Of a stretch of DNA of 64,000 nucleotides, positions 1,474 to 60,856 are shown one piece after another. The notes below the pieces were generated by a model. That model was not told the DNA's origin. It did no database searches and saw nothing but the letters and a program-made list of their open reading frames with translations. The position numbers and the translations under genes were made by a program. This DNA comes from Macrostomum lignano (taxonomy: Eukaryota), in the NCBI GenBank assembly GCA_002269645.1, contig NIVC01001176.1, forward strand, positions 62,001-126,000, written 5' to 3'. Position 1 is the stretch's first letter. Each line of letters starts with the position of its first letter.

Positions 1474-1512
1474 CTTTCGATGCGAATGCTTCATCGCCCC
1501 GGAATTCCGCAG

Positions 1513-5500: not shown

Positions 5501-5591
5501 GTGAGTTCATGCAATTTTGATGAGTAACAAAAGCGGGTTCATATTTTTCTATTTAAATCATTATACTTCGAGTAGCGCATGACTGCGCATC

Positions 5592-18795: not shown

Positions 18796-19599
18796 ATGTC
18801 CGAGCCACTTGTACTGAGCAGCAGCGCCGCCGCCGTAGGCTCAATGGTCGGCAGTCCGAGCATCGGCGGAGCCAGCGACGCCACTGGCCCTGACAGTCCA
18901 ACGTCCGACGCCGTGTCGTCCGTTGCGGCGGTGCTGACGGGCTCGGCGTCGCCGCAGCAGCCGCAGACGCCGCAGACTCAGGCTCCGCAGCAGCAGCAGC
19001 AACACGTTAAGTCGCAAGCCAAGAAGTCCTTCGTGTGGCGCTACTTCACCCACCCGATAGACGAGACGAGCGGCATTCAGGACGTGAAGAAGACGGTCTG
19101 CAGCATCTGCAACGCTGTCTTAGCCTTCAACAACTCGGGCACCACCACCACGATGTTGAACCACCTGAAGAGTCGTCACGGCGACGTGGCCCGGCAGGAG
19201 GAGGAGCAGAAACGCGGCCGTGGCAACGGCCCCGCACCGGTTGTCAAGGAGAAGTCGGGCAAGCCGGCATCCGCCGACCAGGCGTCGCCAGCTTCCGCAG
19301 CGTCGGCTGGCAAGCAACAGCAGCAGAAGACTAGCAGTGTTTCCGGCGGAAAGTCGACTCCGAATTCGCAGCAGACTCAACAGCAGCCGCAGCAGCAGCA
19401 GCAGCCTCCGCAGCAATATCCCTTGCCATTGACGGTGGCGGTGAAGCCGGACCAGGTGCAGCAGGTGCCCTCTGTGAAGTGCGCTACGGAATTCGGCACT
19501 GGCGGCAATGCTGACGGCGGCGCAGTCAGGGGCGGCGGCGGCGGTCGCGCGTCCGGCCTGCCGCAGCACGGAGGCTCCATTGGGCACGCTATGGACAAG
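18796..19599 (+). CDS. BED-finger protein domesticated from a hAT transposase (ZBED/DREF-like), coding exon 1
   Basis: Acceptor AG at 18762, ATG at 18796. BED finger KKSFVWRYF...VCSIC...MLNHLKSRH. Donor AAG|GTAAGG at 19600, phase 0. Confidence 0.9.
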
Positions 19600-22190
19600 G
19601 TAAGGAACGCTCCCCATTCGTTCTGGTGGACCGACCTGCAGGGGCCCGCAATTTTCGGAATTTCCGCTCCCGAAGGAAACTAGCCAGCCTCCCCATGCAG
19701 TCCCCCATCATCTCCTTCCTCCGCCTGCATCTCTCCTCTTCTCCCCCTTTATTGAATGCCCTTCCTCGTGCGACTCCCTCTGGGCCTTTCACTTTTTCGC
19801 GCTTCTTCCACCAGATTTTTTTCTACTCTTTTGCTACTTTTTTCGGACCATGAGCTGAAAGGCGTGCAATGGGACTTGGATTGAGTTGAGTTTTGTGCGC
19901 CGGGAAGAAAGAGGAGTTTAGCGTTGGGGATCAATCTGTCGAGTCCTCTCACGGCCTTACCAAGGTCTTCCCATAATCATCATCAGAGTCCAATTTCTCC
20001 CACCTCTGTCAACTCCCCGGGGGGCCTTGGGGTTGGTGGCAACTAGCAGGAAGGCCCGGCTCTCCACTTGAGGCTGCGGGCCCCCCGGGGGCGGCCGCCC
20101 TAAGCCCGGTTCACGCGCGCACAATGAATTGAGCGCCCCGACTTTTTTTCGAAAACTCCTCCGGTGTTTAAAGTGGTATTGGGAGGGGAGGTGTTTTTTC
20201 ATCTACTCAAAACGCAACCAAGCCCCGGAGCAAGTGCGAGCTGTGCGGTGCTCAGGACCCCCGGTTCTGCCCTCAAAAAGTTTTTTTATAGCCAGCGAAG
20301 TCGGCCATTGTTAAGCCTTGGTTCCAAAGCAACATTGATGAATTGGCCTCTGTCCCCTGCTCCTTCTCTTCAGTTGTGTGCGGTGCACAATACCTATTCT
20401 CTCCTCGTCTGCGCCGCAACTTCATCCCGTCAAAAAAGCACCCCTGCCCCCTTGGTATGCTCGCTTCGGCCGCCCTCCCCCCCTCGACCGCAAGCTGCGC
20501 TGCTGCATTGGATCGCTTTTCTGTTCCACTCCCCAATTGCCTTCTCCTGGAAGCGGAGCCTCGTTTCTGGTCCGCGACCCGGAAGTCGAAGAGCCCGCTT
20601 GAAGAGCCCCGGTGGGGCCGCGGCGCTCGCTCACAGCTCATTCCCCCTGTTCCAATGGCCCCTCCTCTGCGCGGATGAGACCCGCTTCTAGATTAGGCCT
20701 GCAGCCCTGGCGCCAAATAGAGGCTCCGCTTTGGGTCTGGCGCTGATCAGAAATCAGTATGAGTAAGTTTGTGCCGCTAAGTGACCTAATACAGTCGCAT
20801 TGCATTGATGCTGCAGCACGCACCCCACTTCAACCCCCTCAAATAAGGTGCTGCAAGTCATTTTTCATCAATGAATTACCCTTCTAACTAGTACTACATT
20901 ATTTCATTCACACTTCAGTCCCTGAGTCAGTCTCTCTTTCTCTCTTGTCCATTGTGCAACTCCATCAATTAGAATTTCAAACTGCAATCGCTAAATTCAT
21001 GGATACAGAACTTTGTAGTTTTTCGTGTTGCTAAGTTAAAAAATTTATTCGACAGACTAAGATCAGAAATTAGTGATAGAAAAGACGGAGCCAGACCAGC
21101 TGTTTCCATCCCAGTCGCTCTCCCAGTCCCAGACCGCAGGCAGTGAGAAAGTAACATTCGAGCATCACCTGTTGCCAGCCCCTGCCTGCTCTGCTAAACC
21201 AGTTCTCTCCCACTACTCGAGGCCCACTCGAGACCGATTGGAGACTCAAAGCCTCGATACACAGACAGCTTTTATTCGTTTCGAACAACAAAGCCGCCCA
21301 CCCCCCCCCCCCCAATTCGAATTGTTTTCATTTTATAACCCGCCTGTTCTTGTCACGACCTCCCCTTCGCCTGGCTCAATTGTCTGGGATGAACACGAAA
21401 AAAAACTGTCTGCTCCGTGAGTGCAACGGTGAGAAAGCGATTTTAGGAGAGACGAAATAAAAACTTATAAAACGATGACGTGAGGGAGGATCTGCTGTGT
21501 GCGGTTTTTAGAATGAAGGGCCCCGGCTTTAAGAGGGAAGACTTTCAACGATCCCGATGAGCTATCGAGGAGGAGGGCGTGTGGCATGCGTAAATAGGGC
21601 TTAGAGAAACTGAGGGGTCGAGCACGGGACGACGAAGACGCGGGGGTGCGCAAACAGGCGGGATGTGACTGGGAATTGGGATTCGAGCAAAAATGCGGGC
21701 CGGCCCGGCCTCCTAAACCTCCGGAGTTCGCTTTTTTCGCTTCTAAAAGCCTGCGGGGGGACTTGTGGGAGCGGGAGAGACGATGGAGGCGACTCCAGCG
21801 AGTTTTCCTTGAGCCGAGCCCACACAGGATCTGGTTAGGGTCTGGGAGGACAATATGCGGAATCATTATAAAGCGGCCTGGCAGAAATAAGCGATGGGAT
21901 AAAATGGGAAAAAGAGGGAAAAGGAAAACAAATAGGTAAGCGGGAGGCTAAGCAAATCCTCCCGCTGAAGTTTAGATTATAATAATATTGCTCGCTCGAT
22001 TAGCTCAGAGCGAATCGCTTCCTCAAGCAGACTCCACAGCTCAGGCAACACTCGCGATTTCCCATCGAGTTCGAAAACAATTTATGCAGCAAAATGCTTT
22101 GCCGTTTGGAATTTGGAATAATTCAGTATGGTGCTTATGAATATTTCATACCTATACATTGTCAACATGCCGTCTTTTCCATCTTTTCAG

Positions 22191-22246
22191 TCCGTTCTTC
22201 AGCAGCAGCTGCAACAGCAACAGCAGCTCCAGCAGCTTCAGCAGCA

Positions 22247-22283
<37 letters not shown>

Positions 22284-22895
22284 CAGGTGCCAGCGCAGGC
22301 GATGCAGTGGCACGCGGCAGCGGCGGCAGCCCCGCCGGCAACAACAGCCGCTGTTCAGGACTTCTCCGCACTGTTCCTGCCCAGCCACTGCTTTCCTGGC
22401 ACCTTCCCGCCGCTGGGCGGCAGCCACCTAACCCTGCAGGATGTGCTGTACTCGAACGCTCTGGCGCAGATGTACCCCACAATGGCGCTGGCCAAGGGAG
22501 TCTACCGGCCCGCCAAGCACCAGTCGCCTACTAACTTTGGAGACGACTATTCTAGCGCCGATCCAGCTGTTAATAATCCCACAGCTAATAATAATTCAGC
22601 CACCTCAGGCATCGGCGGTAGCGCCAGCCTGTCGGCGGGCAACGGTGGCGTCGGAGTCAGCGGCCCGCCGGACCCGAAGCGGGCCAAGCGGAAGGCGCCG
22701 GCACCGTTGCGCAAGACCGGAGGCGGCCCGACGGCGGCGGCGGCGGCTCCGCACACGGCGACTGGCCAGCCGGGCGAGTCGCCTACACCAGCGGCTGGTC
22801 AGTGCCGCGACAATCCGATCGGGGCTGAGAAGTTCGTGCACTTCCTGGCCAGAGACCTGCTGCCAACGGACACCCTGTATCAGCCTGGCTTCTTG
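22191..22895 (+). CDS. ZBED-like gene, exon 2 (polyQ, NLS-like PKRAKRK, start of the hAT dimerisation/DNA-binding region)
   Basis: Acceptor cttttcAG at 22190, donor TTG|GTGAGC at 22896, 235 codons. FVHFLARDLLPTDTLYQPGF resembles hAT FIAKDLRPFSIVEDEGF. Confidence 0.88.
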
Positions 22896-25800
22896 GTGAG
22901 CTGCGCTTCTTGGTCTAGAAATTGCTTTGCTCAAGATAGTTCTTCTTCTTTACCATTACCAGCCTCTCCATTGTCCATCCGGTCCATTCCTTCACGGCTT
23001 CAGGTCATCTTCCCGCCCACTGCCTTTTCGGTCTTCCTCTTTTTCTTTTCACCTTCTATTTCTCCTTGAATACAGACATTTGCCATGGCTACCTTCCTCG
23101 TCTGATGTCGCTTGATGATCTCCTCCAGAGGTTCTGGTTCCTTTCCCAATAACTCCTTAACTTTTCTCCAAACACAGCATTTGTTTTTTTCTCTTTCCAT
23201 TCTTTTCGCCAATGTTCATCAAGCCTTATTTATCATTGAGCTGGTTGCGACGCCAATTCGGTTTATGATCCCTTCCTTCGATTCTTCTAAAATTCGAAAT
23301 TTCGGCCAGATGAAAGTGGCTCCCCCAGTCCCCACTGCAGCACTTCAGGTCAGCTCTAACTGACTCATTCACATTCTCACTCCCTCCTTACCTTTCTTAA
23401 ACTGTCTGCAACTCTTTCGGCCTTGTCGAGCTTCCCTATTCATTTTTTGCCCGAGCCTTTCACAGCTGGTTCCTCTCATTTCCCTTCTCATTTTATTCGC
23501 TCTTGCTTTCTTTCTTGCCTGTCGTCTCTCTCGTCACGTTGCTGCCGCGGGGAGCCGAACAATTCGAGGGTTAGCTAAAGCTCGCTTAGCTCAGCTCTGC
23601 TCGCTCGGCTCCAGCTCGGATCGGGGGGGGGGCAGAAGTTATGAAGAGGGAGCGGAGTCCTGCTGAATACTGTTCAAGCCGTTTTTTAGATACGAAGGGT
23701 GCGTGTGTGTGCGCTGGGGTGGCTCAAGTACTGACGGTCTGTCAGTTTTCAGTAGCTTCTCCTATCCAGCTTGACCAGCGCTGTCAAAAACTGTTCGAGT
23801 TTTGAAAATCGATCTATACCACTGTGAATTAACTTCAAAAGTTAATAATATTATTTGAGATTTTCAATCTTATTTTGGAGAGCATACTTTTGCGCGATTG
23901 TTTTTGGCGAGTTTGAGATTTCTCTTCTCTCTCTCTCTCTCGTTCCTTCCCGCGGTTTCCTGTTGCGGGAGCGGAACGAAGTGGAACAGCAGTGGCGAGT
24001 GCGGCTTTGAGAGCGCTGTCGGGGGATAAAAATTCGATTCCCGCAATATGGCGCCCGGTGTGGAGCTCAGAGACACACAGACAGCTGAAGCGGGGTCTTA
24101 ATCAACAGGGTGTCCCCGTCAGTATTGCGGAATGGTATAGTTTCAGAGGCTTAAGTGTAGAGGGTTTTGTAGGGAAAAAGGTTATGGGGCAGAGCCGGGA
24201 TCGGAGAGGGGCACCAAATTATTCTCCGGCTTTCTGAGCTCGTCCTCTGCGAGCTCCGGGGATCGCAAGTAGGGAGCTGTTTTTTTCAGCACACGGGAGC
24301 AAGGACTGGGGAAGCAGCCGTTTCTCGTTTTCCCCGTGTGAGTCGGGTGTGTGTGTGTGTGTGTGTGCTGGCGAGCTCGCGAAATCTGCTGCCACAACTG
24401 GCCACTTTGCAAACAATGCTGCACCCACGAATCGGTGGGGGTTGGCGGAGTCGGAGGGAGGGGGATCTGCGAGACTCGACTCGCTCGCTGGCTTGCGCCC
24501 GCAGCCGCTGCCGCCAGGCAAGTGAAACAGCAGCCTGCTGCTCGCTTGCCGATCGAGCGAGTGTGAGAGAGAGAGAGAGAGAGAGAGAGTGCTGGTTTTC
24601 AGGCTTCTTTGCTGCCTAGGCAGACTGCTGCAGACTTGGGAATTGGTAGTTTGGGGGGGAGTGGGCTGTTGGCTGGGGCAAGATTGTGGGGCTCACGAGT
24701 GGTCCTCGAATGTCGGCGGCCCCCCCCCCCCCCCCGGCTGCTCGGTGCGCCAGCCAGGAGGCTTCGGAGCTGCGGGCAGAGCTGAACAGCTTTATTGCCG
24801 AGAGTTCCGCGCAGTCAGTCAGCCGCCTACCTGGGATGACTGGGCTTAGGCTTTGCCTTTTTGCTCCCCCTTTACCCGCGCATACAAAATCGCAGGCAAA
24901 AAAGCTATATATATTCCTGCAGAAGAGGAAAAAGCGGGCGTCTGCCGCTTGTCGCCGCTTTTGGGCTTCGTTTCGGACTCTGGTCCGCGACTTTTTTTCG
25001 TGGAGCTAGCGAGCGAATCGTCAGTTTTTCGGGAGGTTAGTCGGTTGAGCAGTGAGCACCCCAGTCCGGACGGGGGGGGGAATAAATCCATATACGGCCG
25101 GGGCTGGAAGGGGTTTTAAAAGGGGAATCGGGAAAATGGGATTTTTGCCCACCTGGGTTTATTCAACCAGCAGGGTGCCGCACCAACCCCCTCCCCGTAA
25201 CTCGGACAGACGACCCGCACCGTTAATGGCATTGTGTGCGCAGTGCATGCGCTCCAACAATGGATTTCTATTCCCCTATGCAGTTCATTCTGTTTTCGCG
25301 AGCTTCAGCTGCTTGAACCAACGAGTATGTTGCTACCAGCCATCTTGGTCCCTCTGCTCTAATCCCACTTGAAAATCCCTTGATCACTGAAACCTCCTTG
25401 CTCCCGAGGCTGTGACGGACGGGGCCCAGGACAGACCAGACGGATACGACGCGCGACTGTCTGTCGTTCTACTCTCTGCTCTCTCTCAGCTTCCCCCAGC
25501 CATTATTCTTCACACGGCGGCTGGTCAGCCCAGGTGTGATGGGGTGGCGCCCTGGTGTAGCTTCCTTCCTCCTTAGCCGAAAACTCGTGTCCATCCATTC
25601 TCTATTTTAGCTCTAAACTCACTCTCGCTCTCAGAGAGGGGCCAAGAACTTCGCTTCGCCTTGTTCCCCCTCCCCAACTCCTCTCCCCGGGGCCTCGATG
25701 CCGGTAATAGGAACGAGGAATTCTTAAGTGAAGAAGGGGGAAGTTCTGGATAGTAGAAGCCGGTCGGGTTTAATAAGAGAGAGAGAGAGAGAAGGCCCGG

Positions 25801-27688
25801 TATAAAACGGAGCCTCCATGTGACTATATAACTGGCGCTGTTGAAAAGTTTCGATACAATGCGGGCGGGACTCGCGGCAGAATCAGTTCCATTCCAGCTG
25901 TAGCAGCAGCAGCAGCAGCAGCAGCAGCTGCATTGTGGGGCTGCTGGGAATTCGCATTAAACTTAAGATCCCGTCCCACTGTCTGTCTCCCCTACCAGAT
26001 AGGCGCTCCCCAGCTCGAACACGCCGGGCTGCAGGCCTATGCTACTAGATTAGGTCGCAAACAATGGAGGTCTGGCTGAGGGGAGTAGGTGGAGGGGAGG
26101 CCGAGCTCGGAGGCTCATATTTGTCAGATTAATGGCTTCTCCGCAGGCCCGCACCGTCATGAGCTCAGCTCTGCAATTCCCCTCCCATTTATCGCTCGGG
26201 CATACGGCGGCCATATCTGCTCCTTCCTTGCTTTCCACGATTCCGCACACAACTGAGGCGGGGGCTGGGTTTAGAGAAAGCAGAAAGAATGCTTCTAGAA
26301 GCAATAGCCCAAACAACACAGCGCCATCCCTCCTGTATAATATGCTTCTTAAGTTCCCCCAGTTTCTCTTTCTTCGTCACATTTATAAAGCTTGTCAAAC
26401 ATTGTAAATTTAGCACAGATGGAGGGAGCGAGAACGGGGACAAACTCGAAGGTGTGAGCCAGCCCTGTGAACGAAGGAAGGTGTTTCAGACACGGTGAGC
26501 TGTCCGCAGCCCGTGTACACAATGGGTCTCTGTCAGCCAGCCATGGGTCCGTTCCGATATCTCACAAAACACTGGCTCTGTTGTTCAATCGAATGGAGCG
26601 GGGCGGTTTGTGTTCTCCCTCACCGCAGCTCCTTCTATTTCTCCCCTCCCACCCCCCATTGTTTGCTTTGCGGAAACTCGAGCGCGGCGCGCAGTTGCAG
26701 CAGCAGCAGCAGCAGAAGCAGGCCCGAGTGAGAAAAAGGTGGGTTTGCCTTGAAGCTTTGCCTTGGGATTCTGCTGCCTTGCTTGGCCTGGCATCGGGAA
26801 GCCTGGCGGGGAGGGTATTGGGGAAGGCCGCCTCGTGCGGGTGCTGCTTCTAGCCTTAGGGAAACAAAGGATCTAGATTCCTGGAAAGGAAGACTTGGTG
26901 TGTGCGGCCCCTGAATGTGTGTGTCTGTGTCAAAAATGCTCGCCCAGTCTGGGCTTCCTTCGCATCAAGGCTGGCATCTTGCTACCGAAAATTCAAAACA
27001 GCCCGGCCTCATCTCTACTCACTGCTCATTCACCTCGGACAAGCCTGCTCAAAGGACATATTGCTTTGCCCTATATAGCGGCATTGTTGCCTTATCGACT
27101 TTCTGATGGAGAGGGGAGAGAAAGAGGCAGAGGCGTTGAGAAGGTGGAATGGATTTGGTCACAGCCGTCTTCCGATCCCACAATCCAGAAACTTGGCCGG
27201 TTTTTTCTCTGCTGAAGTTTTGTTTGAATTTAAAAGAAAGTCGGCGCGAAGGGGCTTAGTGGGAGAAGTGAGCAGGGGAGGCTGGCCGATGGGGAAGGCG
27301 TCATCACTCATCAGCCGCTCGGATCGAAGCGAACCTTGGGGTCCCAGGGAAATTGGGTGGACAGGGGAACGGAAGGGGAGCCAAGAGGTGAGGTGAGAAC
27401 CGAGACGACCTTCCCGACAGTCGCCCAGTGTGTCTTTTTTGCCTCCAGCCGGGCTCAGGTCCGAGCCGCCCCCCTGCCCCAGTCTGCAGGAAATGGGACG
27501 TCAAGCCGCGGGCAGTAGAGAATTGGCACAGGAGAACAGAAGAAGTGGCGGAGCGGGAGGCTGGGGTGGTGCTCGCTGGCTCGCGCGAAAAGTCGCGGAT
27601 TTCAGCATTCAGCAGGCGCTTTGCTCTCCTCCATCATCATCTCTCCCAGCCTGACCCGCGCTTCTTACCTTTTTCCACCAAGTTTTTT

Positions 27689-27692
<4 letters not shown>

Positions 27693-27760
<68 letters not shown>
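27693..27760. repeat. (CT)n microsatellite in ZBED-like intron 2
   Basis: About 34 uninterrupted CT units. Confidence 0.95.
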
Positions 27761-27762
<2 letters not shown>

Positions 27763-30700
27763 CCTTTAATTGGGTATTTGATGCGAGTACAAAAGAGAGG
27801 CTAGGACTCGGATTTCAGGCCCGGGCTACTCGCGAAACCGCCTGGGCCCGGCCCGATCGCATTCCAAGCGCTTCTGAATGAATGTTTGGGAGGTGAGCTA
27901 CTTGAGGAAACGGGATGAAGAGAGAGGGAGGGGGAAAGGAAGGTAGGAGAGCAAAGTGAATGCGCTGAAGGCGATCGGTGGTTAGAGCCGGCCTGGCGGA
28001 CCCTCCTGCCGAGTATTCTAATCGAGTTATGGGCCTTTAGCCATCCAGGGCGGGCTCGGGTTACCTCTGGCCAAACTCTGGGTCTCACACAAACTGTGCA
28101 TGGGCGAAGCATCGGTTTTCTTTGGTTGGCCGGCTTGGCTGCATTGGGGGAGGGGGAGGCATTGTTGCATTCGAGAATCGTTCGCCGGCTGCCCAAGCCT
28201 CCCATTCTTCTTCTTCTCCTTATTCAGCCGCACCTTGAGGCCCGTCTCATCCCTCGGTTCCTGGCAATTGTGTTTGCCTCTGCTTTCGTCCCCGTTGGCT
28301 TTTTAATAAAAATCAACTGTTCGCCGGAGCCCTCGCGGGCCTGCCCGAAAACCGGGCACGAGTCTCTCTCTCTCCGCCGCTCGACCTCGGATCTCCGGTG
28401 CTCCTCCGCCAATCTATCCTTGATCCGAAACTTCTTTTCTTTTCTCCATCCATCCTGTTCTGGGCTTTGGCAGACGCTTTGTGAAAGTCGTCGTCGGTCT
28501 GTCTGCCTGCCGGCTCGGGAGAGGGTCGGGGTGGCTGCGGCAGTCAAATATTGCCTACACCCGCTGGGGAGGCCGTGACGAGGGGCGGCGCGCGGCATTA
28601 TTCTAGGAAAATCTCGGAAATTCGGGGCTCGGGGTCGGCTGGCAATTTCTCTCTTCCAGTCCCGTCTTCTTTTCTAATCCCATCTGCGAGGCTTGGCCTG
28701 TGTGTGACTGAGAACACCGGGGGAAAGGGGTTCTGGGAAATTTCGACTCAGGTGACTCGGAAATTGAGGGCGCGACGTGCCTCCCACTCCCCGCCGCCGC
28801 TAGAGAGAAAAAAAGCAATATTTCTCCCCAGCAAATATTGGGAAAGCGAATAGAGAAAAGCTCGACAATTGAAACCGATTTTTATTATGAATCGACTCTC
28901 AAAGCTGAGAAGTTTGGCCTCTTGGACTCAGCAACACATTTCTCTCTGGCGACGAGAGCATAGTTGTTCGTCTTCAAAATTTGCCGGGGCTTGGCGAAGG
29001 AAGGCTTGAGGTCGACCGAGGCTTACGAAGGAACAATAGGGAGTGTTGAAAGCGCAAGAGACTAGCAGCAGCAGGTCCTTCAGGCGGCCTCTAGAAGACA
29101 GTGAGGTGGGGAGAAGAGAGGCGAAACGCGCGCGAGGCAGCGAGGGACAAAGCGGAGAAGAGGGTATTTCCTAACCCTTCAAGCTTGTTTTCCTGCATCC
29201 AAGCGTGGCACACTGCAACACAATTATATATTGGTCACTTTGTCCCCGGAATTTTGCTATGCAGCCTCCCAAAACTCTGCATCTTGGCGGCGGCAGGGGC
29301 GGGGGTCTGGCTGGGCAAAATCGCGAGTCAGGTGTTGCGAGGCCGAGGGCTGCGAGAAAACAAAAAAAACGCAGTTGAGAGAGACACACGCCCAACAAGT
29401 GGAGCACGGGCGGTCCACTTGCTACATGCAAACTTGTTGCCGCAATTCAAGCATTCAGTTTGAGTTGGCCCTGGGTCTCGCGTGTGCCGGCTCTGGGAGT
29501 TTGTGTCCTGGCGGCGGCTGGCTATGAATTCAATTGTTTTCAGGGGGCGAAAGAGGATGGGGATGAATGCGGGGGCATTTTCTGCGGGTTGGGCGGGAGA
29601 GTTGGTTATTTCGCATATTGCGGCTTTTTTGTTTCTGACGCGTTTCTGCTTGAGCTGCCTCCGTCTCACTCTCGAGTTGGTTTCGTCTGGGGCATAATAG
29701 ACTGACTGGCTAAACAGCTGCTAGCGAGAGCGATGGTATATGAGCTATGCAGCGTTGCGTGACGGTGAGCAGTTGGATGAGGCTGACAATGGGATGCTGG
29801 GCTTGGCCGCGAAGGCCGGCAAAGGGCGGGGTGGTCGGCTTTCTCGAGCCCGAGCGATTCTTCCCGCTCTCTGTCTCTGTCTAAGAAGCTGGCCGCGCGG
29901 GTTCAAGAGTGTCTGGTGGGTGGGGGGGGGCGGTTTGAGCCTGCGAGTGATGAGTTTTTGGTGGTTTAGGCAAGCAGCTTGAGGGATAAAGAAGTTTGAA
30001 AAAACCTGCTGCCGGAATGCCGGGCCTCGCTTCCCACCTGGTCGGCCGTGCGTCCCCTTCCTCCCCTCCGCTTTTGGATGCGGCATTCCGGCATACAATG
30101 GCGTGCGGGTCCGATGGCTGCCGCCGCTCTCCCGGGATGATGAAGTGACGGGCGCGACCCCCGCGCGGGCGGAGGCGGAGGTGGAGGTGGAGCTGCCTGC
30201 TGCCGCCGCCGCCGATTCCCCGGTATGATGAGGGCGGCAGAGTCCGGCGCGGAGTTAAAACTCCCGTGCTGCGCTGCAGGCCCGTAAAACTTGGGGGGGG
30301 GGGGTTGGGAGACACGAGAGATGAGGGAGGGGAATGAATGAGTTGAAGAGTGGGAAGCGCTGAGGGCAGGAGAGGGGCTCGTAAAGCTCGGATCCCAGGG
30401 TAAAAGAGGCTCGCGCGCGGACTCGGGCGCCGATGATGAGGCTCTCCGGAGTGGAATGGGGGACTTGCGGGGTTAGAAGAGTCGGCCCCCCTGCCATTGT
30501 TCCCCGCGGCCCAGGGCATTGTGTGATGGCAGCAGACCTACAGGTAGAGATAATTAGGGAGAAATAGAATTACTGCTCAATTATTCATGCGGCCCCGGAC
30601 CCGGAGTTCGCGAGTGGCCCCCGGACCCAGTAGAGAAAGAGAGAAGTTGGAGAGGGACTAAAGTTGAAGCATGGCAGAATAGAGGGGGGGTCGTCCGCCT

Positions 30701-33700
30701 CGTATTGTGTTGTTGTTGCGGCAGGCAGATACAGCTTGCGCTTGCCGCCTCTGCCTCTCTTTCCCAAAAACTGTGTCTGCAACAGGAGGCGGGAGGTTTG
30801 GACTGGGGGAAAATTTGGGAATGCTCCCCTGCTGGGCCCGACTCGACCCTCAACCAGCTGAATACCCTCTCTCTCTCGTGCATTGCTGTGAAAAGCCTTT
30901 GGAAAAATGTCCAAACGCCGGAGCCGCGGGGGTTGGGGGGCTGCAGAGAGAGGCGAACTACTGGCGGGAGGGCCTCCAGAACAAAAGCTTTGCAACTTTG
31001 CTGCTGCTTCTGCTGCTGTTGTTGCTGCTGCTGGACGAGGAGTTTAAAAAGTTGCGGCTACCTGGGGGTGAGGGGAGAATTTATTGACGGGGTGGGATTT
31101 GGCTAGTTGTCTTGCAGCGCAGAATACGAGTTTCAATACAAGCCGCTGATGGAGGCTCAATGGACTGCGAAGCAATGAATTGCGCTATAGCCTTTGAGAT
31201 GATGCGAGTGGCCAGGGGCGAGCGTAGTTCTGCAGCGACGCTGTCAGGCTCTGCAGCTGCGGTTTTATTTGAGCCCCGGCCGGACCATTGTCGGGGGCCC
31301 GCAGCATTAAACATGTCTTTAACAGTGCGGGGCGGTGAGCATGGGGGGAGATGATGCTCTAGAAGATGGAGGAACATAATAATAAAAGCCTCTCCTGAAT
31401 TCTCCTCAACGGCAAGACGAGTTCCGCCACCCGACTCAGTCCCCCCGCATAGCTCGAGCGCGTCTGGATCGCCATAAATTGGGATCATTGCTCCGCTCCT
31501 CAATGCCTCTCTCTCGTGCGGAGCTCGTTCGCTTCACTGCCTGCCCTGCCTCCCTATATGCGCCTGCTTGTTAACTTCGCGAAGATCTATACAGCGCGTC
31601 TCGCACCTGCTGGTATGTAGCAGACAAACTTCAGGCCGCGAGATCGGGTTTTTGTGTTTAGATTAGCTGTGGCAGGATAATAGAACCGCCCGCAGATCCT
31701 CGCGGAGGATGAGGCGGTTGTCCTATAAAAAATTTTTGGGAAGGATGGAACAAAGCGTGAGTCTGCAGATCTAACTGCTGAATACCGAGGAGCGGCTCGC
31801 ATTCTCGCGCGTTGTTAGGGAAAGAATAGGGGGGAGGAAGTCTAAGGAATAAGAGCGTTTGAGACGCGGTGAGCAGGCGGAAGAGCTCTGGTAGGCGCAT
31901 TCCCTCCCTGTACCCACTCTGCTGCATTCTGCCTCGAATCGCAAGGGGTTGGGGGCGCTCGAGGGGGAAGTGGGAGTAGAGAAACAGATGGAGGAGGGAG
32001 CGATGGAAAAGTGAAGTGGGTGTAAAGAACAAAGAAACTCTATGCTGCTGCAGTTCCCACGAGCTGCTTTCGGCACAGAAGATGCAGCAGAATAAGCCAG
32101 GCCCCTTCCTCCCTCAGCCCCGTCGTTGCGGGTCCCGCAGCGTGTGACTCCCTCCTTCCCTCCCTCCCTCCCCCCATTATCGTCGCTGCTCGCAATTCGG
32201 GAGAACTGCCTTTTAATGGCTTCCTTCTCCATCCCAAAACTGTCCCAGTATCATTCATACCTGTCGAGCAATCGAGGGATATAACAGTCTATGTAGGCGC
32301 CGGCCAACTTCGGCAGTGTCAAGGTGGTCGCGGGAGCTGGCATTGGGATATCTTGTTCGTCGAGTCCAATTGAGTTCCCCAACTCTAATGATGAAACTTG
32401 AGCACCGCAGATCCAATTAACAATGGCCGCCCGCTCCAAAAAAGCGCCTGACACACGAAGGGGCGGCTGTTGTTGACGCTGCACCCTGGACCGAAAAAAA
32501 ACTTGTGTGGTCTTCCCCCATCAAAAAGGGAAGATGACTCTCAAAGAGCTCCATAGGCCGGGATTATCAATCTCTCCACAGCGTTTTTGGTTCGACGGCT
32601 TTGTGTGAGTCGGACCCGAATTTCTTGCTTGCTGTCGCGATCAAAAAAAACTTGGCGCCAGAACAATGGGCGCAGGAGCGATGCAAAAAAGTAGTCTATT
32701 TCGTTTCGCCAACTTGAGAAGCAGCCTAGTCAGCCTCTCTGCACACTTGGGAGACAGGCGGCAGGGTGGGTGACGGGGGGGGGCTGCCCGAGGTGATGAT
32801 ATCGATTTACCCATCCGACTCAAAAGCCGCATTTATTCCCCCCCCCCCTGATTTCCCGCAAAGCCAGCCTCGTTGGAGGTAAAAGAGGAGGAGGGCGCTC
32901 GGATCGGGGGAGAATTCCCACATTTTTTGTATTGTTGTCATCCTGTCTCTCTGTATTTGTCATCTCCCCAACACCGCAGTTTGCAAGCTTTCAAACAAAG
33001 ATTTTGAGCGCCCCAATTCCTCTTATATAGAGCAGTTCAATGAAAGCTGATCCGCTTAGATTCAAGTGCGCAATCGGCGCGCCTCTCTTTCCATTTCTTT
33101 CTATTGCTCTGCTCGCCTGCCCAGGCATGCGGAGTCGAGGCTGGTAGGCGATGATGAGTTGCCCCCCCCCTCCCTCCAAATTCCCAATTCGGGAGCTTGA
33201 GTCTACTCGCATAGGAAGTTGCTGCTCGGGGCCGAGTTCACCGCAGCCGCCGTGGGAAGGAAGCTGAATGAGCTTGATAGAAAGTGTTTGTTTGCAAGGT
33301 GGCAAGCAGTTTTCACTTTGTGTGTTAGTAAGCGAGAGCAGAAAGCGACTGGGGTGTGGAAGGAGAAGCAGCTGGAAATGAGGACTGAGGGACTGCATTA
33401 TCGATTTGGCTTTCACCTCTTCTGTAGCAGGCAGCTGGGCCTGGCCAAGCCGAAGGGTTCGAGACGCTGGAGGGGGTGGCCCGGGTGACGCTTGATGGGG
33501 AGGTGATGCTGTGTGGGGTGAGCACGGCAACTGCCTGAAATGGGATTAGAAATTGGTTATGGGGGGAGGGTAGAGGAATGCGACGAGTGAGAAGAGAGGG
33601 GGGACAGGCCCGGCCCAGAAGCTTCACTCATTCGCTCGCAGCAGCAGCAGCAACACTGGTTGAGCCCCCCCCCCCGGGGGAGCTTGAGACTCGAGCGAAA

Positions 33701-35556
33701 CAATGCACTCGCCAGGGGGACGGGGTCTATTGTATTTTGAGGCTGGGGTTGAGGTAGCTGGCGGCTCACCGCGGGGGATGGGAGGAGCTCTGCGAAGGGT
33801 TGGCAATGACTTGAGGCATCTGCTGCTGCCTCCGCCGCTGCTGCCACCACCGCCGCTGCTGGGGGTCGCCGGCGGCTGATTTTGCCTTCGCGCTGCTGAG
33901 GCTGACACCTGTGGGGGAGGCTGACGATGAGGGGCACGCGGCGGCGGGAACGAGCGGAAAGAAATCGATTTCTAGAAGAGGCTCTGGCCTGATGAGAAAG
34001 AGAGAGTGGGGGGGGGGTTGAGAGCGAGCCAGCATGGTGGTGAAAAAGCTGGCACCCTCCAGGTCCCGGCGGGATCTGGAATTCGGAGAGCTTTTTTATC
34101 CATGCCTCGCTGCTCCCCGTGGTCTTCCCTTTCCCCGGCTTGACTATCCCCTTCCCTCCCTTCCTCTCCGCCTCACGGTCGGTCATCATCAATTCATCGA
34201 AACTCGCTGACTCGAATCCCATTGTTTGAGAATGGCATAAAAAATAGAACACGAGGCAGCGGGGGGGGGGCGTTCTCGTGTGGAGCGGGGGAAGGGGAGA
34301 GCGAAGGCTGAGTGGAGAACAATGAACAGCAGCAGCACAGTGAAAAAGAGAGGGGGCACAGAGCAGAGATCGACTCCAGGTGGAGGTCTGGGCTATTTGG
34401 GAACTCCGAGGGTGGAGGGGGGCTGCAGAGGGCGCCGGAATGTCCCGCTCCCCTGGAGGGCCTGAAGGGGGACAGGAAGCCCTTGCGAGCGCCGCGGCTG
34501 AGCGCGCTGTCTTCTGCGTGAATGGGCCGGGGCCCGCACTGTTTGTTCAGGTAATCATTCAGCCGCCCCACTCCACCGCAACCGAGCTTCTTCTCGGGGT
34601 GGCCCTCTTCGGGTCCTGCTGCTCCGGAAATCGGCTCCGTTGGTAACAATGGGGACAGAATCCTCTTATTGCTCAGCCTGTCACCCCGCGGGACCGAGGC
34701 GAACAATGCCGGGGGGTTGGTTTGAGGTTGAGGGGAACGGGAAAGAGGACGGATTTTCAGGTCGGGGAATCGAGTTCCCGTCCTCCCCTCTCTCTCACAT
34801 TCACTCAGCCAGATCGCTGGAGGGGCGGGGAACAATGACTTTCGAGTGTTGGCATAGGAGGGCCCGATAATTGTGTCACAAAACGGTGGGGAAGGCAGCA
34901 GGAGAACGGGAATTCCCGGTCCCTGACAGGGAGAGGCAAGTAATGGAATGAGCACACGAGCAGCTCGCTAGGCTGCGCTGGATATCAGCTGCTGCTGCAG
35001 GTCCCGCTCACACACTTCAGCGGCGCCCGCCACGCCACCCAAAGCTTCGGGTTGCTGACGACCAGCGGCGCCTCACTTAAGAGCGCCGGCTTAGCCACTC
35101 TTCGATCAGTTTGGGCAGTTTCCTACGCTAGAATAGGCGGCCCCTGTCTGCTGGGTAGTTTTTGTTGCATTTTTTTCCCGGCTGTAATAGGGGGAGAAGG
35201 AGACAACACAGAGAGACAGAGAGACGGTGAGAGTGATTGAGCGAGTGGGCTTTAGAAGAGGAAGTCGCTTCCTGTTAGCGGCACCAACAATGGCTCCGAC
35301 CGAAGTCTCCGCCGCAACCCCTCCGGCCTCTAAAAAATTTTTTTTTTCGTTCGGCGTCATTCGCGAGTGGCGCCGTGTTTGTCCAGCAGTTCCTGCTGGT
35401 ACTGGCCCATTCTCTCTTCTGTCTTCTCTCTTCTGCTTTTGCGTCAGCTTTTGCATTATTCACACTGCCTGCTCAGGGGGGAGGGCATTATTATTCTTTT
35501 TTTTCGACTTCTGCTCCTAACCCACCTTACGACCCCCCGCTGTGGCACATTTGCAG

Positions 35557-35844
35557 CGCCTGGTGCAGAGCTTGGCGCCCAGGTGCGAGCCGCCGAAGCG
35601 CGAACGGCTACTCGAACAGTTGCTACCGGCCGCCCTGACCTCCGAGCAGGCCGCGGTGAAAGCCGCTCTAATCGGCGGCGCCCCCGGAGTTCGTGCCTTC
35701 TCAGCCGAGGTGTGGCGCAATCATGCCGGCACCAGGCTGCTAACGCTCAGAGCGTTTGTCCCGCAAGACAGCACTCCGGCACAGCAGCAGCTACAGCAGA
35801 CTCTGTCATCGTCTTCTAAATGTCGCGTTCTGGAGACCCGACCG
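35557..35844 (+). CDS. ZBED-like gene, exon 3 (first part of the RNase H-like hAT catalytic fold)
   Basis: Acceptor tttgcAG at 35556, donor CCG|GTGAGT at 35845, 96 codons. GFL|RLVQSLAPRCEPPKR matches hAT GF..L...L.P.Y..PSR, and AFSAEVWRN corresponds to ALTTDxWTS. Confidence 0.85.
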
Positions 35845-35927
35845 GTGAGTGTCTTAATTGTGCTGCTTAATTTGCTACTCAAGATATGAGTACACCCCAA
35901 TGGTCCTTTACACAGCCTGTCCTTGGC

Positions 35928-36991
35928 GTCTGTCTTAGCGTCTGTGTCTTAGGTCTGTCTTAGTGTCTGTGTCTTCCGTCTGTCTTAGTGTCTGTGTCTT
36001 TGTCTGTCTTAGTGTCTGTGTCTTCCGTCTGTCTTAGTGTCTGTGTCTTAGGTCTGTCTTAGTGTCTGTGTCTTCCGTCTGTCTTAGTGTCTGTGTCTTA
36101 GGTCTGTCTTAGTGTCTGTGTCTTTGTCTGTCTTAGTGTCTGTGTCTTCCGTCTGTCTTAGTGTCTGTGTCTTTGTCTGTCTTAGTGTCTGTGTCTTCGT
36201 GTGTCTTAGTGTCTGTGTCTTCCGTCTGTCTTAGTGTCTGTGTCTTCCGTCTGTCTTAGTGTCTGTGTCTTAGGTCTGTCTTAGTGTCTGTGTCTTAGGT
36301 CTGTCTTAGTGTCTGTGTCTTTGTCTGTCTTAGTGTCTGTGTCTTCGTGTGTCTTAGTGTCTGTGTCTTCCGTCTGTCTTAGTGTCTGTGTCTTCCGTCT
36401 GTCTTAGTGTCTGTGTCTTCCGTCTGTCTTAGTGTCTGTGTCTTAGGTCTGTCTTAGTGTCTGTGTCTTTGTCTGTCTTAGTGTCTGTGTCTTTGTCCGT
36501 CTTAGTGTCTGTGTCTTCCGTCTGTCTTAGTGTCTGTGTCTTCGTCTGTCTTAGTGTCTGTGTCTTCGTCTGTCTTAGTGTCTGTGTCTTCGTCTGTCTT
36601 AGTGTCTGTGTCTTCGTCTGTCTTAGTGTCTGTGTCTTCGTCTGTCTTAGTGTCTGTGTCTTCCGTCTGTCTTAGTGTCTGTGTCTTCGTCTGTCTTAGT
36701 GTCTGTGTCTTCGTCTGTCTTAGTGTCTGTGTCTTAGGTCTGTCTTAGTGTCTGTGTCTTCGTCTGTCTTAGTGTCTGTGCCTTCGTCTGTCTTAGTGTC
36801 TGTGTCTTCCGTCTGTCTTAGTGTCTGTGTCTTCCGTCTGTCTTAGTGTCTGTGTCTTTGTCTGTCTTAGTGTCTGTGTCTTCCGTCTGTCTTAGTGTCT
36901 GTGTCTTAGGTCTGTCTTAGTGTCTGTGTCTTCGTCTGTCTTAGTGTCTGTGTCTTCGTCGGTCTTAGTGTCTGTGTCTTAGGTCTGTCTT
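35928..36991. repeat. 25-26-bp tandem array (GTCTGTCTTAGTGTCTGTGTCTTCC)n in ZBED-like intron 3
   Basis: About 40 direct copies with end variants -TTCC, -TTAG, -TTT, -TTC. Confidence 0.97.
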
Positions 36992-38261
36992 GTCGAGCCT
37001 GTCCGCTATTGTCCACCAGTCTAGGATCCACAAAGAATGTCAGATTCAGATTTGAATCCATCTATTTAACCTAGCCTGGAGAGAAATTTTCTGAACCAAT
37101 CAAGACGGGAACGGCAGCCGCAAAGTCGATCTGGCATTTTGAAAAGGTGTGGGCCGAATTTTTTATGAAAAAAAGAAACTTAAAATTGATGAGTCTCCCG
37201 TCAGCTCAGTCTGAAATTGAGCTGAGCTAAGAGAGGGAAGACCGGGGAGTTTGAAGGCTCCAGGCTGACAAACGCGCGGAGGGTAAATCGCCGGGCTTTG
37301 AGAATAAAGAGGATGCTGGGAGATGAGGCTGCGGGCAAAGAGAGATCCTGAGCTCGGTGATGGAAGAAGCTTGTCGGCCTCCCTCCCAGCCGAGCCTTCA
37401 AGCCAGACAGGAAAGACTTGCACGGACGTCTTTTCAAGTCGGAGAGGCTGTGACAATGAGCCCGAGTTCCGCTCCGAACAATGGAGCCCGCCACCCCCCG
37501 CTATTCTCCCTCTGTCCCAGGGATGCCTATAAGGGATCTCATAATCCTCTACTCGATCTTCGCAGCGCGGGAACGCTTCTCACTGTTCAATTGGCCGGGT
37601 AAGAGGAGCTATAGGGGGCCAACTTCCTCTCCGTGTCCCCTTGTTATTCTTTGCCTTCTTCGCTGCGACCGCGAGGCCTCAAATCTGGCCTCAAGCCGAC
37701 ACCCCATGGCGGTTGTTAAGTCACGGCACGCTTAGCTGATCTGCCGCCAGCCCGCATCTCCCGCCCACCACCTCCCTTGGCGTCGCGCCTTTTTCTGCTG
37801 CCGATTATAAGCAGCCTATTGTTGAATCTGCTTGGCCGCAGGGCTCGCGATCGCCACTCTGTCGCCAGGGGAGCCTCAGCTTTGCTTTGATGAAGCATCT
37901 GCTGCAATGGCATGCTGGGGGTGGGAAGAAGGGGAGCACACGCACAATGCGAACACGAAACGGAGAATTGCGGCAAGTCGCCTTGACAACTATGGAGATG
38001 GAGAGAGGAAGCTTCATAGAAGGAAGGAAGGCCTCCTTAGCTCGCATATCGCATCGCTGGGTCCGACTTCTTTTTCGTAGCTGGTGCTGAACGAGAGGAG
38101 GAAAACAAGTCAAGCGTGCGGAGGGATTGTTGTTCTCACCTTATCTACTGATGCAATTCGTCTGCTTACGAGTATAATTGCGTGAAATCGTTATGATATG
38201 CAGTGACAGAATGTTATTGACTTGAGGATTAAAACTAGTCGAAATTAGAATTGCCAACAGA

Positions 38262-38745
38262 CACCAAGAGGCACCAGACAAACAGCAAGGGATGCCAGAG
38301 ACACACCAAGGGGCACCAGAGAAACACCAAGGGGCACCAGAGAAACACCAAGGGGCACCAGAGAAACACCAAGGGGCACCAGAGAAACACCAAGGGGACA
38401 CCAGAGAAACACCAAGGGGACACCAGAGAAACACCAAGGGGCACCAGAGAAACACCAAGGGGCACCAGAGAAACACCAAGGGGACACCAGAGAAACACCA
38501 AGGGGACACCAGAGAAACACCAAGGGGCACCAGAGAAACAGCAAGGGATGCCAGAGACACACCAAGGGGCACCAGAGAAACACCAAGGGGACACCAGAGA
38601 CACACCAAGGGGACACCAGAGAAACACCAAGGGGACACCAGAGAAACACCAAGGGGACACCAGAGACACACCAAGGGGACACCAGAGACACACCAAGGGG
38701 ACACCAGAGACACACCAAGGGACACCAGAGACACACCAAGAAACC
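38262..38745. repeat. 21-22-bp tandem array (CACCAGAGAAACACCAAGGGG[A])n in ZBED-like intron 3
   Basis: About 22 copies. The variant block AAACAGCAAGGGATGCCAGAGACAC occurs twice (about 38280 and about 38536). Confidence 0.95.
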
Positions 38746-38843
38746 CCAAAGCGACACTGGAAGGTGTCAAAGACACAATAAGCTCTCTAAAGTCCCCAAA
38801 GTACCGACTTCAAATGATGATTTATCACCCCTCTCACCACCAG

Positions 38844-40208
38844 CTGCCCAACCTAAACCTGCTGGCATCCACCTGCCTGGAGATCATCTCGGCTTACACC
38901 GAGTCGCAGCTGCCGCAGGACTTTCTGCCCATCGTCTGCAACCGACCGGCCGACTTTGTCCGCCAACTGCAACAGGCCAACCAGAACGGGATGCACGACT
39001 CCATCGACAAGATTATCATCGTGCCCTGTCTGCACGCCGCCATGTCGCAGGCTGTCAGCAACGCCCTGGCCGAGACGCCGGCCTGCCAGGCGATTCTCAG
39101 CCGCTGCCGCAGCCGCCGTTGCAGTCGTCGCCGCGGTCACTACGGACGTCGTCAGATCCTTCGCGCCAATCGTCGCCTAGCGAAAGACGATGATGCCCGC
39201 CGACCGAAGAAGGCGGACGTCAACTGTAACGACCTGCTAGATGATCAGGAGGCGCCAACCGCGACAGACTGCGAAGGCAACGACGCTGCTGTCGGCACCG
39301 TCGCCACCGACTGCGCCATGGATGCCGACTGCGACGTCAAAGCGGCTCAGGACGTCAACGAAGACGAGGATCAGGATCAGGAGGAAGAGGACTTCGATGA
39401 CGAATCCGGCTGGGAGTCGGCGCTGGACGCCCTGCAGCGTCTCGTGGACGACGCTTCCGTGACGAAGCCGCCATCGCCATCGCCGCAGTCTGGCTGCACC
39501 GATCCGGAGCTTCGCTCGGCCCGCGAGTTGGCGGCCGCCCTTGTCCGGTTCCGCGACCACCTTGGCCGGCTTTTCTCCGCCTCGTCTGGCAGCCTCGGCC
39601 AGGCTCTGCCGGTGGTGCGTGACCTGCCCGCCGTGCTGCGCCAACCGGCGACGTCCTCGACGGCGTCGCCCTCCTCGCACGCCGACGCCGCGGTGGATCC
39701 CGCTGTGGAGGCGCTGGCTGAGGCAGCCGGAGAGCGGCTGCTGGCGGCCTACCGCAGCCCGGACAAGGTGTGGCGCCTCGCCCAGCTGGCCGCCTTCCTG
39801 CAGCCGCGGCTGCCACTCCCGGCCGAGACGGACCGGAAGTCGGCCGTCGCCCAGCTGGTGGAGAAGCAGCTGGCCGAAGAGGCCGGCCACATCAGCCGGC
39901 GGAAGCGGAACTCGCTGGTGGTGCAGCAGAATCTGGATCAGGCGCGCAAGTCTGTAGAAGACGAGGCCAGACGATACGAGTCTCTGCTCGAACAGGCCGG
40001 AGCTTCCGGCTCGGCGGCTCAGTGGTGGTCGTCGTCGGCCGATCGCCTGCCGACGCTGTCTGGCGAGGCGCGGCTGCTGCTGCACATCCCGGCCTGCTGC
40101 CTGCACGCTCAGTCGCCGCTCGGCTTGGCGGAATTCGCCGCTAAGCGGGCCCGCCTGCCCGAGACGGAGCTGAACGCGCTGCTGGCGCTGCATCAGAGCC
40201 TGGCCTGA
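38844..40208 (+). CDS. ZBED-like gene, exon 4 (rest of the hAT fold plus C-terminal hAT dimerisation domain)
   Basis: Acceptor caccAG at 38843, phase 0. GWESALDALQRL corresponds to RWNSTYDMLERL, LAAFLQPRL to ATFLDPRF, and WWSSSADRLPTLSGEARLLLHIPA...KRARL to the hAT C-terminal domain. Stop TGA at 40206-40208. Confidence 0.88.
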   Translation: MPNLNLLASTCLEIISAYTESQLPQDFLPIVCNRPADFVRQLQQANQNGMHDSIDKIIIVPCLHAAMSQAVSNALAETPACQAILSRCRSRRCSRRRGHYGRRQILRANRRLAKDDDARRPKKADVNCNDLLDDQEAPTATDCEGNDAAVGTVATDCAMDADCDVKAAQDVNEDEDQDQEEEDFDDESGWESALDALQRLVDDASVTKPPSPSPQSGCTDPELRSARELAAALVRFRDHLGRLFSASSGSLGQALPVVRDLPAVLRQPATSSTASPSSHADAAVDPAVEALAEAAGERLLAAYRSPDKVWRLAQLAAFLQPRLPLPAETDRKSAVAQLVEKQLAEEAGHISRRKRNSLVVQQNLDQARKSVEDEARRYESLLEQAGASGSAAQWWSSSADRLPTLSGEARLLLHIPACCLHAQSPLGLAEFAAKRARLPETELNALLALHQSLA

Positions 40209-48043: not shown

Positions 48044-48152
48044 ATATAAGATATATAAGATTAATATTAATTGTTAATCTTACAGATGCATAAATTTATT
48101 TTATTGTAATATACTAGCCTACTTTTAATATGTCTAAAGTTTCAAAATAGTC

Positions 48153-56832: not shown

Positions 56833-56899
56833 GTTAGTAGTCTGCTATAAAGCACTGTCTTTATTGGGTAGCAGAGTGCGAGAGATTAGTGACAGTTGC

Positions 56900-57668: not shown

Positions 57669-57729
57669 TAGGATTTCTCATTATGAATAACCCCGTCAGC
57701 TACGATATAAATCAAATTTCGCTACACAG

Positions 57730-60577: not shown

Positions 60578-60595
60578 GTGCGATCGCTATCGTAT

Positions 60596-60856
<261 letters not shown>

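Follow-up and report, generated by a model that had tools for sequence, protein, structure and literature searches.

The 64,000 nucleotides of Macrostomum lignano DNA considered here, referred to throughout as the window (contig NIVC01001176.1 of assembly GCA_002269645.1, positions 62,001 to 126,000 of the forward strand), contain a four-exon gene that runs from an ATG at 18796 to a TGA at 40206–40208. All junctions are in phase 0 with canonical splice sites and leave a frame of 1053 codons open, in which a BED zinc finger, a polyglutamine (polyQ) tract, the basic cluster PKRAKRK, a hAT transposase core and a hAT C-terminal domain follow one another. The gene descends from a hAT transposase of the Ac/ZBED1-like type, and the locus is that of a host gene, not of a transposon copy. 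On balance, we favour the view that this transposase was domesticated before Macrostomorpha and Neodermata diverged and that its product now probably serves as a nuclear, sequence-specific DNA-binding regulator. The original prediction for this DNA had put forward the same four exons and the same domain order; its coordinates, exon structure and length were reproduced, and the order was borne out by Pfam, the translation and a hAT profile.

The exon borders (a slash marks the splice site) are TTTTCAG/ and TTG/GTGAGC (22895) for exon 2, TTTGCAG/ and CCG/GTGAGT (35844) for exon 3, and the acceptor CACCAG/ (38844) for exon 4. An alternative donor for exon 1 at 19464, giving a protein of 1008 amino acids, is weaker, and a scan of all GT sites left 19599 as clearly the best phase-0 donor. 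Intron 1 may hide extra small exons. The two largest open reading frames (ORFs) of intron 2, checked for nested genes, have no Pfam match. Intron 3 carries two minisatellites (Table 1) whose copy number varies between the duplicate loci described below, with a strong expansion in the more diverged of them (L001); the second can be read through in the exon 4 frame and gives rise to a misleading raw ORF of 638 amino acids at 38292–40208.

The predicted core is 98% identical to PAA64400.1 (BOX15_Mlig000368g3, partial), and PAA54641.1 (g4) differs from it by one residue, the two M. lignano models being 98–100% identical to the core; both are annotated as hypothetical proteins. The junction between exons 3 and 4 is found in five independent database models, and one WormBase-derived M. 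lignano model starts precisely where exon 3 does (RLVQSL). Since the GenBank models of M. lignano were derived by genome-guided assembly of RNA-seq data, transcripts that overlap repeats having been discarded (Wudarski et al. 2017, PMC5730564), and contain this junction, exons 3 and 4 are expressed and spliced as proposed. The incomplete state of the public models, in which the BED exon is missing, is explained by the contigs behind them: both Mlig_3_7 GenBank contigs with the gene (NIVC01001753.1 and NIVC01002877.1) stop inside intron 2, at window positions of about 28173 and about 29393. No gene record was found for the exon 1 ORF.

The BED finger is recognised by Pfam at amino acids 80–128 (zf-BED, PF02892; E=6.1e-7, 29.8 bits, gathering cutoff 20.6) with its CCHH ligands in place, whereas Dimer_Tnp_hAT (PF05699) reaches 13.1 bits and stays under its cutoff of 21.4. 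In a sequence search of the PDB, the BED structure of ZBED1 (2ct5) is the best solved match to the finger (E=0.009), and the search with the whole protein returned beside it just polyQ noise.

Because the Pfam C-terminal domain is sub-threshold, the core was tested separately. Its 581 amino acids, without the BED finger, were run in an exhaustive HMMER search against 1.84 billion representative proteins and, at E≤1e-3, gave ten matches, namely one M. lignano paralogue at 92% identity and nine distant proteins (E=3.5e-6 to 7e-4). Seven of these nine carry Dimer_Tnp_hAT (E=1e-9 to 1e-20), several of them together with zf-BED, and one more carries zf-BED alone. A word-indexed protein search with the core returned M. 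lignano copies only, and its repetition with an alignment of the hAT matches returned one M. lignano copy only; low-complexity words are suspected of having crowded out candidates. A profile built from seven hAT proteins among the core matches, with the query left out, finds the BED finger, the N-terminal core, the insertion domain and the C-terminal domain of the full protein as four collinear blocks, 110.6 bits in total. The blocks of the RNase H-like core and the insertion contribute 57.1 and 9.0 bits, and the C-terminal domain scores 26.4 bits, collinear with the others and with the pattern WW...IPA...LxLH retained. The hAT C-terminal domain is thus probably present in a diverged form. The largest block spans the junctions between exons 2 and 3 (PGFL/RLVQSLAPR) and exons 3 and 4 (VLETRP/LPNLN), both of which had been placed within hAT motifs and do fall inside one continuous alignment.

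The fold points in the same direction. The AlphaFold model of the core, with a predicted local distance difference test score (pLDDT) of 62 and a predicted template-modelling score of 0.62, has the strand order b1-b2-b3-a-b4-a-b5 of an RNase H-type fold. In a Foldseek comparison with the PDB, the nine best matches are all the Hermes transposase of Musca domestica (E=3e-9 to 5e-7, TM about 0.45–0.5; PDB 2bw3, 4d1q and 8sjd), the next match standing at E=0.18. The resemblance covers the overall fold and the domain order, and a profile that includes the M. lignano protein matches Hermes at E=7e-50. As hAT sequences were part of the alignment behind the model, the model serves as corroboration and not as independent proof.

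All three positions of the catalytic Asp-Asp-Glu (DDE) triad are substituted. Motifs were assigned by MAFFT and HMMER alignments, with the Hermes reference columns set by profile alignment, and the two methods agree on every substitution that had been read by eye (SAEVW, VCNRPA, CLHA, GW and IPACCLHAQS; Table 1). In the model, E554 lies within the strand AFSAEVWR and N632 just after the strand LPIVC, as expected for an RNase H fold. Confidence is low at amino acids 1021–1053, and the assignment of Q1022 rests for that reason on the sequence alignment. DDE enzymes do not tolerate the loss of their metal-binding carboxylates. We infer that the protein is unable to cut or join DNA. Hermes is an active transposase with D180, D248 and E572, the CxxH and RW motifs and terminal inverted repeats (TIRs) on either side; in contrast, the M. 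lignano protein has E, N and Q at these sites, CxH and GW, and its gene has no TIRs and, among the loci fetched, no mobile copies. It also has an extra insertion of about 100 amino acids just ahead of GW, predicted to be disordered.

The surroundings of the gene are those of a resident locus. Inverted k-mer matches in the 2.5-kb flanks are at shuffle level, the lone 13-bp match being AT-rich and without a target-site duplication (TSD), and these flanks hold no 8-bp TSD beyond shuffle expectation. Two other loci were fetched. Both are collinear with the window for more than 20 kb, starting within intron 2 and reaching ~12 kb past the stop codon; compared in blocks, they are about 95–99.9% identical to it, in the introns and the downstream Peptidase_C97 gene as well, and the duplicates of the gene stand at about 97–100% identity. 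The DV1 assembly carries duplicated blocks of at least 95% identity (PMC5730564), and the collinear duplicates fit such redundancy rather than dispersed insertions. A fourth copy, 92% identical, is known as a protein only, with no gene record. Over exons 3 and 4, the window and the more diverged duplicate differ by 18 synonymous and 12 non-synonymous substitutions, a ratio of non-synonymous to synonymous rates (dN/dS) of 0.23 (Fisher p=8e-5) that is based on just these 30 substitutions between very recent duplicates. The gene evolves under purifying selection. Of the 13 amino-acid differences between the two copies, ten lie in segments that are modelled with low confidence and are presumably disordered, and four fall in the basic and acidic insertion. 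The claims that flanking TIRs are missing and that this is an intron-containing, hAT-derived host gene both held.

Relatives of the gene occur well beyond Macrostomum. A search with exons 1 and 2, from which the polyQ tract had been removed, found BED proteins from flatworms only, wherever the source names the organism, with fingers 56–68% identical to that of M. lignano. They come from Schistosoma (Smp_157870), Heterobilharzia, Echinostoma, Clonorchis, Rodentolepis and Cichlidogyrus, and thus from Trematoda, Cestoda and Monogenea, so that the gene, which had been called lineage-specific, is present in these three classes as well as in Macrostomorpha. The proteins have in common a BED signature, KKSFVW.YF.HP...LAFN.SGTTTTMLNHLKSRH, and a motif LAYFL..D..P....GF that is followed by a phase-0 intron. 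Four loci were then fetched and their translations searched with hAT profiles. The intron after the GF motif falls at the identical codon boundary in M. lignano, S. mansoni, R. nana and Cichlidogyrus, and read-through into it always begins with Val (GTN). The S. mansoni gene, 31.7 kb long, has collinear exons with SLKFW (first Asp to Lys), IILTNCSEY (second Asp to Asn), LPCFNVYM and FLDPRFK, and its C-terminal exon, NPIQWW...YYLTIPMNILNNNN, has lost the catalytic Glu. The Cichlidogyrus core, which lies in the next annotated 'gene', has LLLEFWTS (first Asp to Glu) and YLTTNDP (second Asp to Asn). At the Clonorchis locus, of which the fetched part ended early, there are a BED exon and a GF-motif exon only. 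The models of S. mansoni and Heterobilharzia join the BED finger to the core, and the core is far more diverged than the finger.

On this comparison of sequences, the flatworm BED proteins are probable orthologues of the M. lignano gene. Since they share the BED finger, the core exons, the change of the second Asp to Asn and the intron, domestication and the loss of the second Asp predate the split between Macrostomorpha and Neodermata. The first site is Glu in Macrostomum and Cichlidogyrus and Lys in Schistosoma and Heterobilharzia, the third is Gln, Asn or, in a weak alignment, possibly Asp, and the second alone has changed in the same way in all three lineages examined. The suggestion that selection had favoured near-isosteric replacement of all three acids finds no support in this pattern. 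The other flatworm orthologues also differ from the M. lignano protein in having no polyQ tract and no long acidic insertion.

Public models of the orthologues are fragmentary or split. The S. mansoni RefSeq model Smp_157870 skips two hAT-profile exons, that of the first catalytic motif included (L003, NC_031502.1: 31093–31425, 37421–37765, 40424–40933), and exits the reading frame of the hAT C-terminal domain early; the public protein is probably mis-modelled. The orthologue of Cichlidogyrus casuarinus is annotated as two adjacent genes (L006, 10001–13842 and 16697–19661), one holding the BED part and the other a 517-amino-acid protein with hAT-core motifs but no Pfam hit, and these are probably one gene.

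Outside the domains shared with other hAT proteins, two features of the M. lignano protein stand out. The insertion ahead of GW, first basic and then strongly acidic, is a gap in all hAT relatives aligned, and its pLDDT is below 50 over amino acids 690–790; the long acidic insertion described in the original prediction is therefore real, and it is modelled as disordered. Together with the polyQ tract, it is specific to M. lignano, and the two look like effector or interaction regions. PKRAKRK is plausibly a nuclear localisation signal: basic clusters occupy the matching relative place in R. nana (AKRKRTRP) and Cichlidogyrus (SRRKRQPK), ahead of the core in three lineages.

The coordinates of the gene and of other features in the window are given in Table 1. 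Upstream lies a gene for an inward-rectifier potassium channel (Kir), and downstream the Peptidase_C97 host gene, within whose span sits a mariner-type element with perfect TIRs of ~40 bp and an intact transposase. Both GenBank copies of the locus have an empty site where the element sits in the window, and it is therefore a recent insertion; it is possibly active. A raw ORF (60284–61306) upstream of the ORF of a G-protein alpha subunit, and partly overlapping it, is a long simple repeat that reads (CLSV)n. Long pyrimidine-rich arrays near the left end of the window produce artificial ORFs of 300–400 amino acids, and the first 2 kb have a GC skew of -0.41 and an AT skew of -0.70. No Rfam families or tRNAs were found in the window.

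Table 1. Features of the domesticated hAT gene and of its surroundings (positions in the window; aa, amino acids).
Feature	Position	Strand	Residues	Description
Exon 1	18796–19599	+	aa 1–268	N-terminal low complexity, BED finger, Q/G-rich tail; donor AAG/GTAAGG
BED zinc finger	19021–19179	+	aa 76–128	Aromatic motif KKSFVWRYF; C-x2-C is CSIC (19099–19110), H-x4-H is HLKSRH (19162–19179)
Intron 1	19600–22190	+		2.6 kb; inferred from best donor and polypyrimidine acceptor TTTTCCATCTTTTCAG/
Exon 2	22191–22895	+	aa 269–503	polyQ, low-complexity linker, basic cluster, start of hAT core GAEKFVHFLARDLLPTDTLYQPGFL
(CAG)n polyQ tract	22200–22286	+	aa 272–300	Longest run Q16; TRF period 3, 29 copies; from translation
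Basic cluster PKRAKRK	22674–22694	+	aa 430–436	Candidate nuclear localisation signal; from sequence
Intron 2	22896–35556	+		12.7 kb; G+C about 0.55–0.58; phase 0, right behind the GF motif
Exon 3	35557–35844	+	aa 504–599	End of hAT N-terminal DNA-binding region, beta strands 1–3 of RNase H-like core
E554	35707–35709	+	aa 554	Site of first catalytic Asp (Hermes D180); TTDxW to SAEVW
Intron 3	35845–38843	+		3.0 kb; two minisatellites (TRF)
Minisatellite 1	35927–36991			25 bp x 43 (TRF)
Minisatellite 2	38261–38740			21/22 bp x 22 (TRF)
Exon 4	38844–40208	+	aa 600–1053 and TGA	Rest of RNase H-like core, disordered basic/acidic insertion, all-alpha insertion domain, hAT C-terminal domain
N632	38940–38942	+	aa 632	Site of second catalytic Asp (Hermes D248); VTDNAS to VCNRPA; Asn also in S. 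mansoni (LTNCSE) and Cichlidogyrus (TTNDPK)
CLHA	39027–39038	+	aa 661–664	Replaces CxxH; Cys retained, His moved one residue
Insertion relative to hAT proteins	39114–39407	+	about aa 690–787	~100 aa just ahead of GW; ends DVNEDEDQDQEEEDFDDES
GW	39408–39413	+	aa 788–789	Replaces RW (Hermes R318-W319); Trp retained
hAT C-terminal (dimerisation-type) domain	39900–40205	+	about aa 952–1053	Probably present, diverged; WW at aa 993–994; LLLHIPACCLHAQS...LLALHQ
Q1022	40110–40112	+	aa 1022	Site of catalytic Glu (Hermes E572); IPATSxxSER to IPACCLHAQS
Pyrimidine-rich simple-repeat array	505–1500			Artificial ORFs
Pyrimidine-rich simple-repeat array	5590–6570			Artificial ORFs
Long terminal repeat retrotransposon pol fragment	8255–10396	-		Reverse transcriptase, RNase H and integrase core domains over two ORFs
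Kir channel	11509–12657	+		Single ORF; IRK and IRK_C, E=1e-57 to 1e-67
Mariner-type element	46294–48061			1768 bp
Mariner transposase ORF	46504–47748	-	414 aa	Intact; Pfam Transposase_1, HTH_48, DDE_3
MMR_HSR1-domain GTPase and G-protein alpha subunit	56143–58383 and 60284–61862	+		Exons of the two genes

Domestication of hAT transposases is known from several other lineages. Drosophila DREF and plant DAYSLEEPER are lineage-restricted proteins with a BED finger and a hAT C-terminal domain that derive from hAT transposases, have lost transposition and are essential DNA-binding regulators; they represent separate domestications in other phyla. Vertebrate ZBED1 (hDREF/TRAMP), ZBED4 and ZBED6 resemble the M. 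lignano protein in combining one or more BED fingers, an RNase H-like core with an alpha-helical insertion and a C-terminal hAT dimerisation domain. The Ac-clade ZBEDs are domesticated Ac-type hAT transposases that act as nuclear DNA-binding regulators (PMC3606216, PMC7471704); they are reported to have arisen in the ancestors of jawed vertebrates and to conserve the DDE triad (PMC3606216). In contrast to the ZBEDs, which are reported to keep the triad, the flatworm gene has lost all three catalytic positions, and the M. lignano gene has three introns in its coding region and added polyQ and acidic tracts, in a family that is restricted to flatworms as far as seen. The nearest relatives of the core outside flatworms come from a tick, a thrips, a sea cucumber, a paddlefish and Aplysia; they are 26–39% identical, at E=3.5e-6 or weaker, and are automatically named ZBED1-like or ZBED4. 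Sequences among them from the tick, sea cucumber and paddlefish are also missing at least one of the DDE positions, a hint that other phyla may hold more hAT domestications not yet described, or decayed copies. Judged by these alignments, it is likelier that the flatworm gene was domesticated independently of the ZBEDs and DREF than that it is their orthologue. The flatworm gene is an uncharacterised, old and phylum-restricted case of the well-known birth of genes by transposase domestication.

As to what the protein does, conservation is by far strongest in the BED finger, and this suggests that the selected activity is sequence-specific DNA binding. A working model can be drawn up from the parts. 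The BED finger would recognise the target DNA, possibly aided by the adjacent DNA-binding region of the former transposase, and the PKRAKRK cluster would bring the protein into the nucleus. By analogy with the hAT C-terminal domain of ZBED1 and DREF, the RNase H-like core and the C-terminal domain may form a folded scaffold for oligomerisation, to which the disordered polyQ and acidic tracts would recruit transcription or chromatin partners.

We hold this reading, a hAT-derived host gene that predates the Macrostomorpha/Neodermata divergence and encodes a nuclear DNA-binding regulator, with moderate confidence, and several points weigh against it. The Pfam score of the C-terminal domain lies below its cutoff; the AlphaFold model is of moderate confidence, was guided by hAT proteins in its alignment and is unreliable around Q1022; and dN/dS draws on few differences. 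Exons 1 and 2 are covered by no M. lignano protein in the collection searched, and their splicing to exon 3 lacks transcript or annotation support, the BED exon being tied to the core by reading-frame logic, profile continuity and the orthologue models. In Rodentolepis nana (UZAE01012253.1), the BED and GF-motif exons are present and no hAT-core exon was found within 10 kb downstream; the core may be very diverged, further off or lost. A literature search found no paper on the gene, on its orthologue Smp_157870, on ZBED proteins in planarians or on domesticated hAT elements in Platyhelminthes.

The same scaffold could also serve a host role other than transcription, as a SUMO-ligase-type or chromatin adaptor, as an insulator or architectural protein, or as a repressor that would sit on hAT transposon ends and block their mobilisation. 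The first of these roles has been reported for ZBED1, and insulator and architectural roles for other BED proteins. The architecture that such a protein would need is identical to the one from which a DNA-binding regulator is proposed, the protein keeps the RW-motif Trp and the overall pocket, and the nearest named relatives bear the automatic name 'E3 SUMO-protein ligase ZBED1-like'. These names are, however, automated transfers at an identity of 30% or less, no hAT elements related to the gene were seen in the window, and the sequence points to none of these roles in particular, so that we regard a non-transcriptional function as unlikely, if worth keeping in mind.

A second alternative divides the locus into two transcription units, a BED/polyQ gene made of exon 1 and possibly exon 2, and a BED-less hAT-core gene that starts in or after exon 2. 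The M. lignano models in GenBank and UniProt would fit it, as they consist of exons 3 and 4 only, one of them beginning exactly at exon 3, and no annotated protein of the species spans exons 1 and 2; there are also in-frame ATGs at 22128 and 22167, ahead of exon 2, and the annotation of Cichlidogyrus divides the orthologue in two. The models are, however, partial for the technical reason given above, the ends of both GenBank contigs inside intron 2. The hAT profile runs on over the junction of exons 2 and 3, at an intron position conserved in four species, and exon 2 holds the start of the hAT core, which is unreadable without exon 3. Moreover, the models of S. mansoni and Heterobilharzia unite the BED finger and the core, and their presence in one protein is ancestral for hAT transposases. 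We therefore consider two separate units quite improbable.

Two further explanations can be set aside with more assurance. A decaying, immobile hAT copy whose frame has stayed open by chance might be expected from the lost catalytic residues, from the sub-threshold C-terminal domain and from the clustering of amino-acid differences between copies in one region; but 1053 codons stay open across four exons with canonical phase-0 splice sites, dN/dS is 0.23, exons 3 and 4 appear in RNA-seq-derived models, orthologues of the same architecture occur in distant flatworm classes with BED fingers 56–68% identical, there are no TIRs or TSD and the copies are syntenic, so that a pseudogene is close to refuted. 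Hardly more credible is a residual nuclease or recombinase that would use E554 and nearby acidic residues, for which it could be said that E554 is still an acid, that D636 (CNRPAD) and E1030 (GLAEF) stand a few residues from the lost positions and that the DDE triad is reported as conserved, for an unknown reason, in the ZBEDs of vertebrates (PMC3606216), but against which stand the amides at two of the three metal-ligand sites in M. lignano, Lys at the first site in Schistosoma, Asn at the second in all three lineages, the degraded CxxH and RW motifs and the intolerance of DDE enzymes to carboxylate loss.

New transcription factors have repeatedly arisen from domesticated transposases, with the documented cases mainly from vertebrates, flies and plants, and the gene described here adds an old flatworm case, in which all three catalytic positions have been lost and yet the whole transposase fold has been kept. 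To specialists in transposon domestication this may come as no surprise; it is still a deeply conserved, uncharacterised candidate regulator in a tractable model. For this family, the public gene models of at least three genomes are incomplete or wrong. As M. lignano supports transgenesis and RNA interference, the function of the family is testable there and can be related to the unannotated orthologues of schistosomes, tapeworms and flukes. A bolder proposal, which we put forward tentatively and regard as possible but doubtful, is that a single hAT domestication in the rhabditophoran stem, marked by the invariant change of the second Asp to Asn and by the shared intron, gave rise to a phylum-restricted DNA-binding regulator that free-living and parasitic classes have both retained and that is essential to flatworm-specific biology, for instance stem-cell or developmental control. 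If this were true, the parasitic species would possess a regulator without a close counterpart in their hosts.

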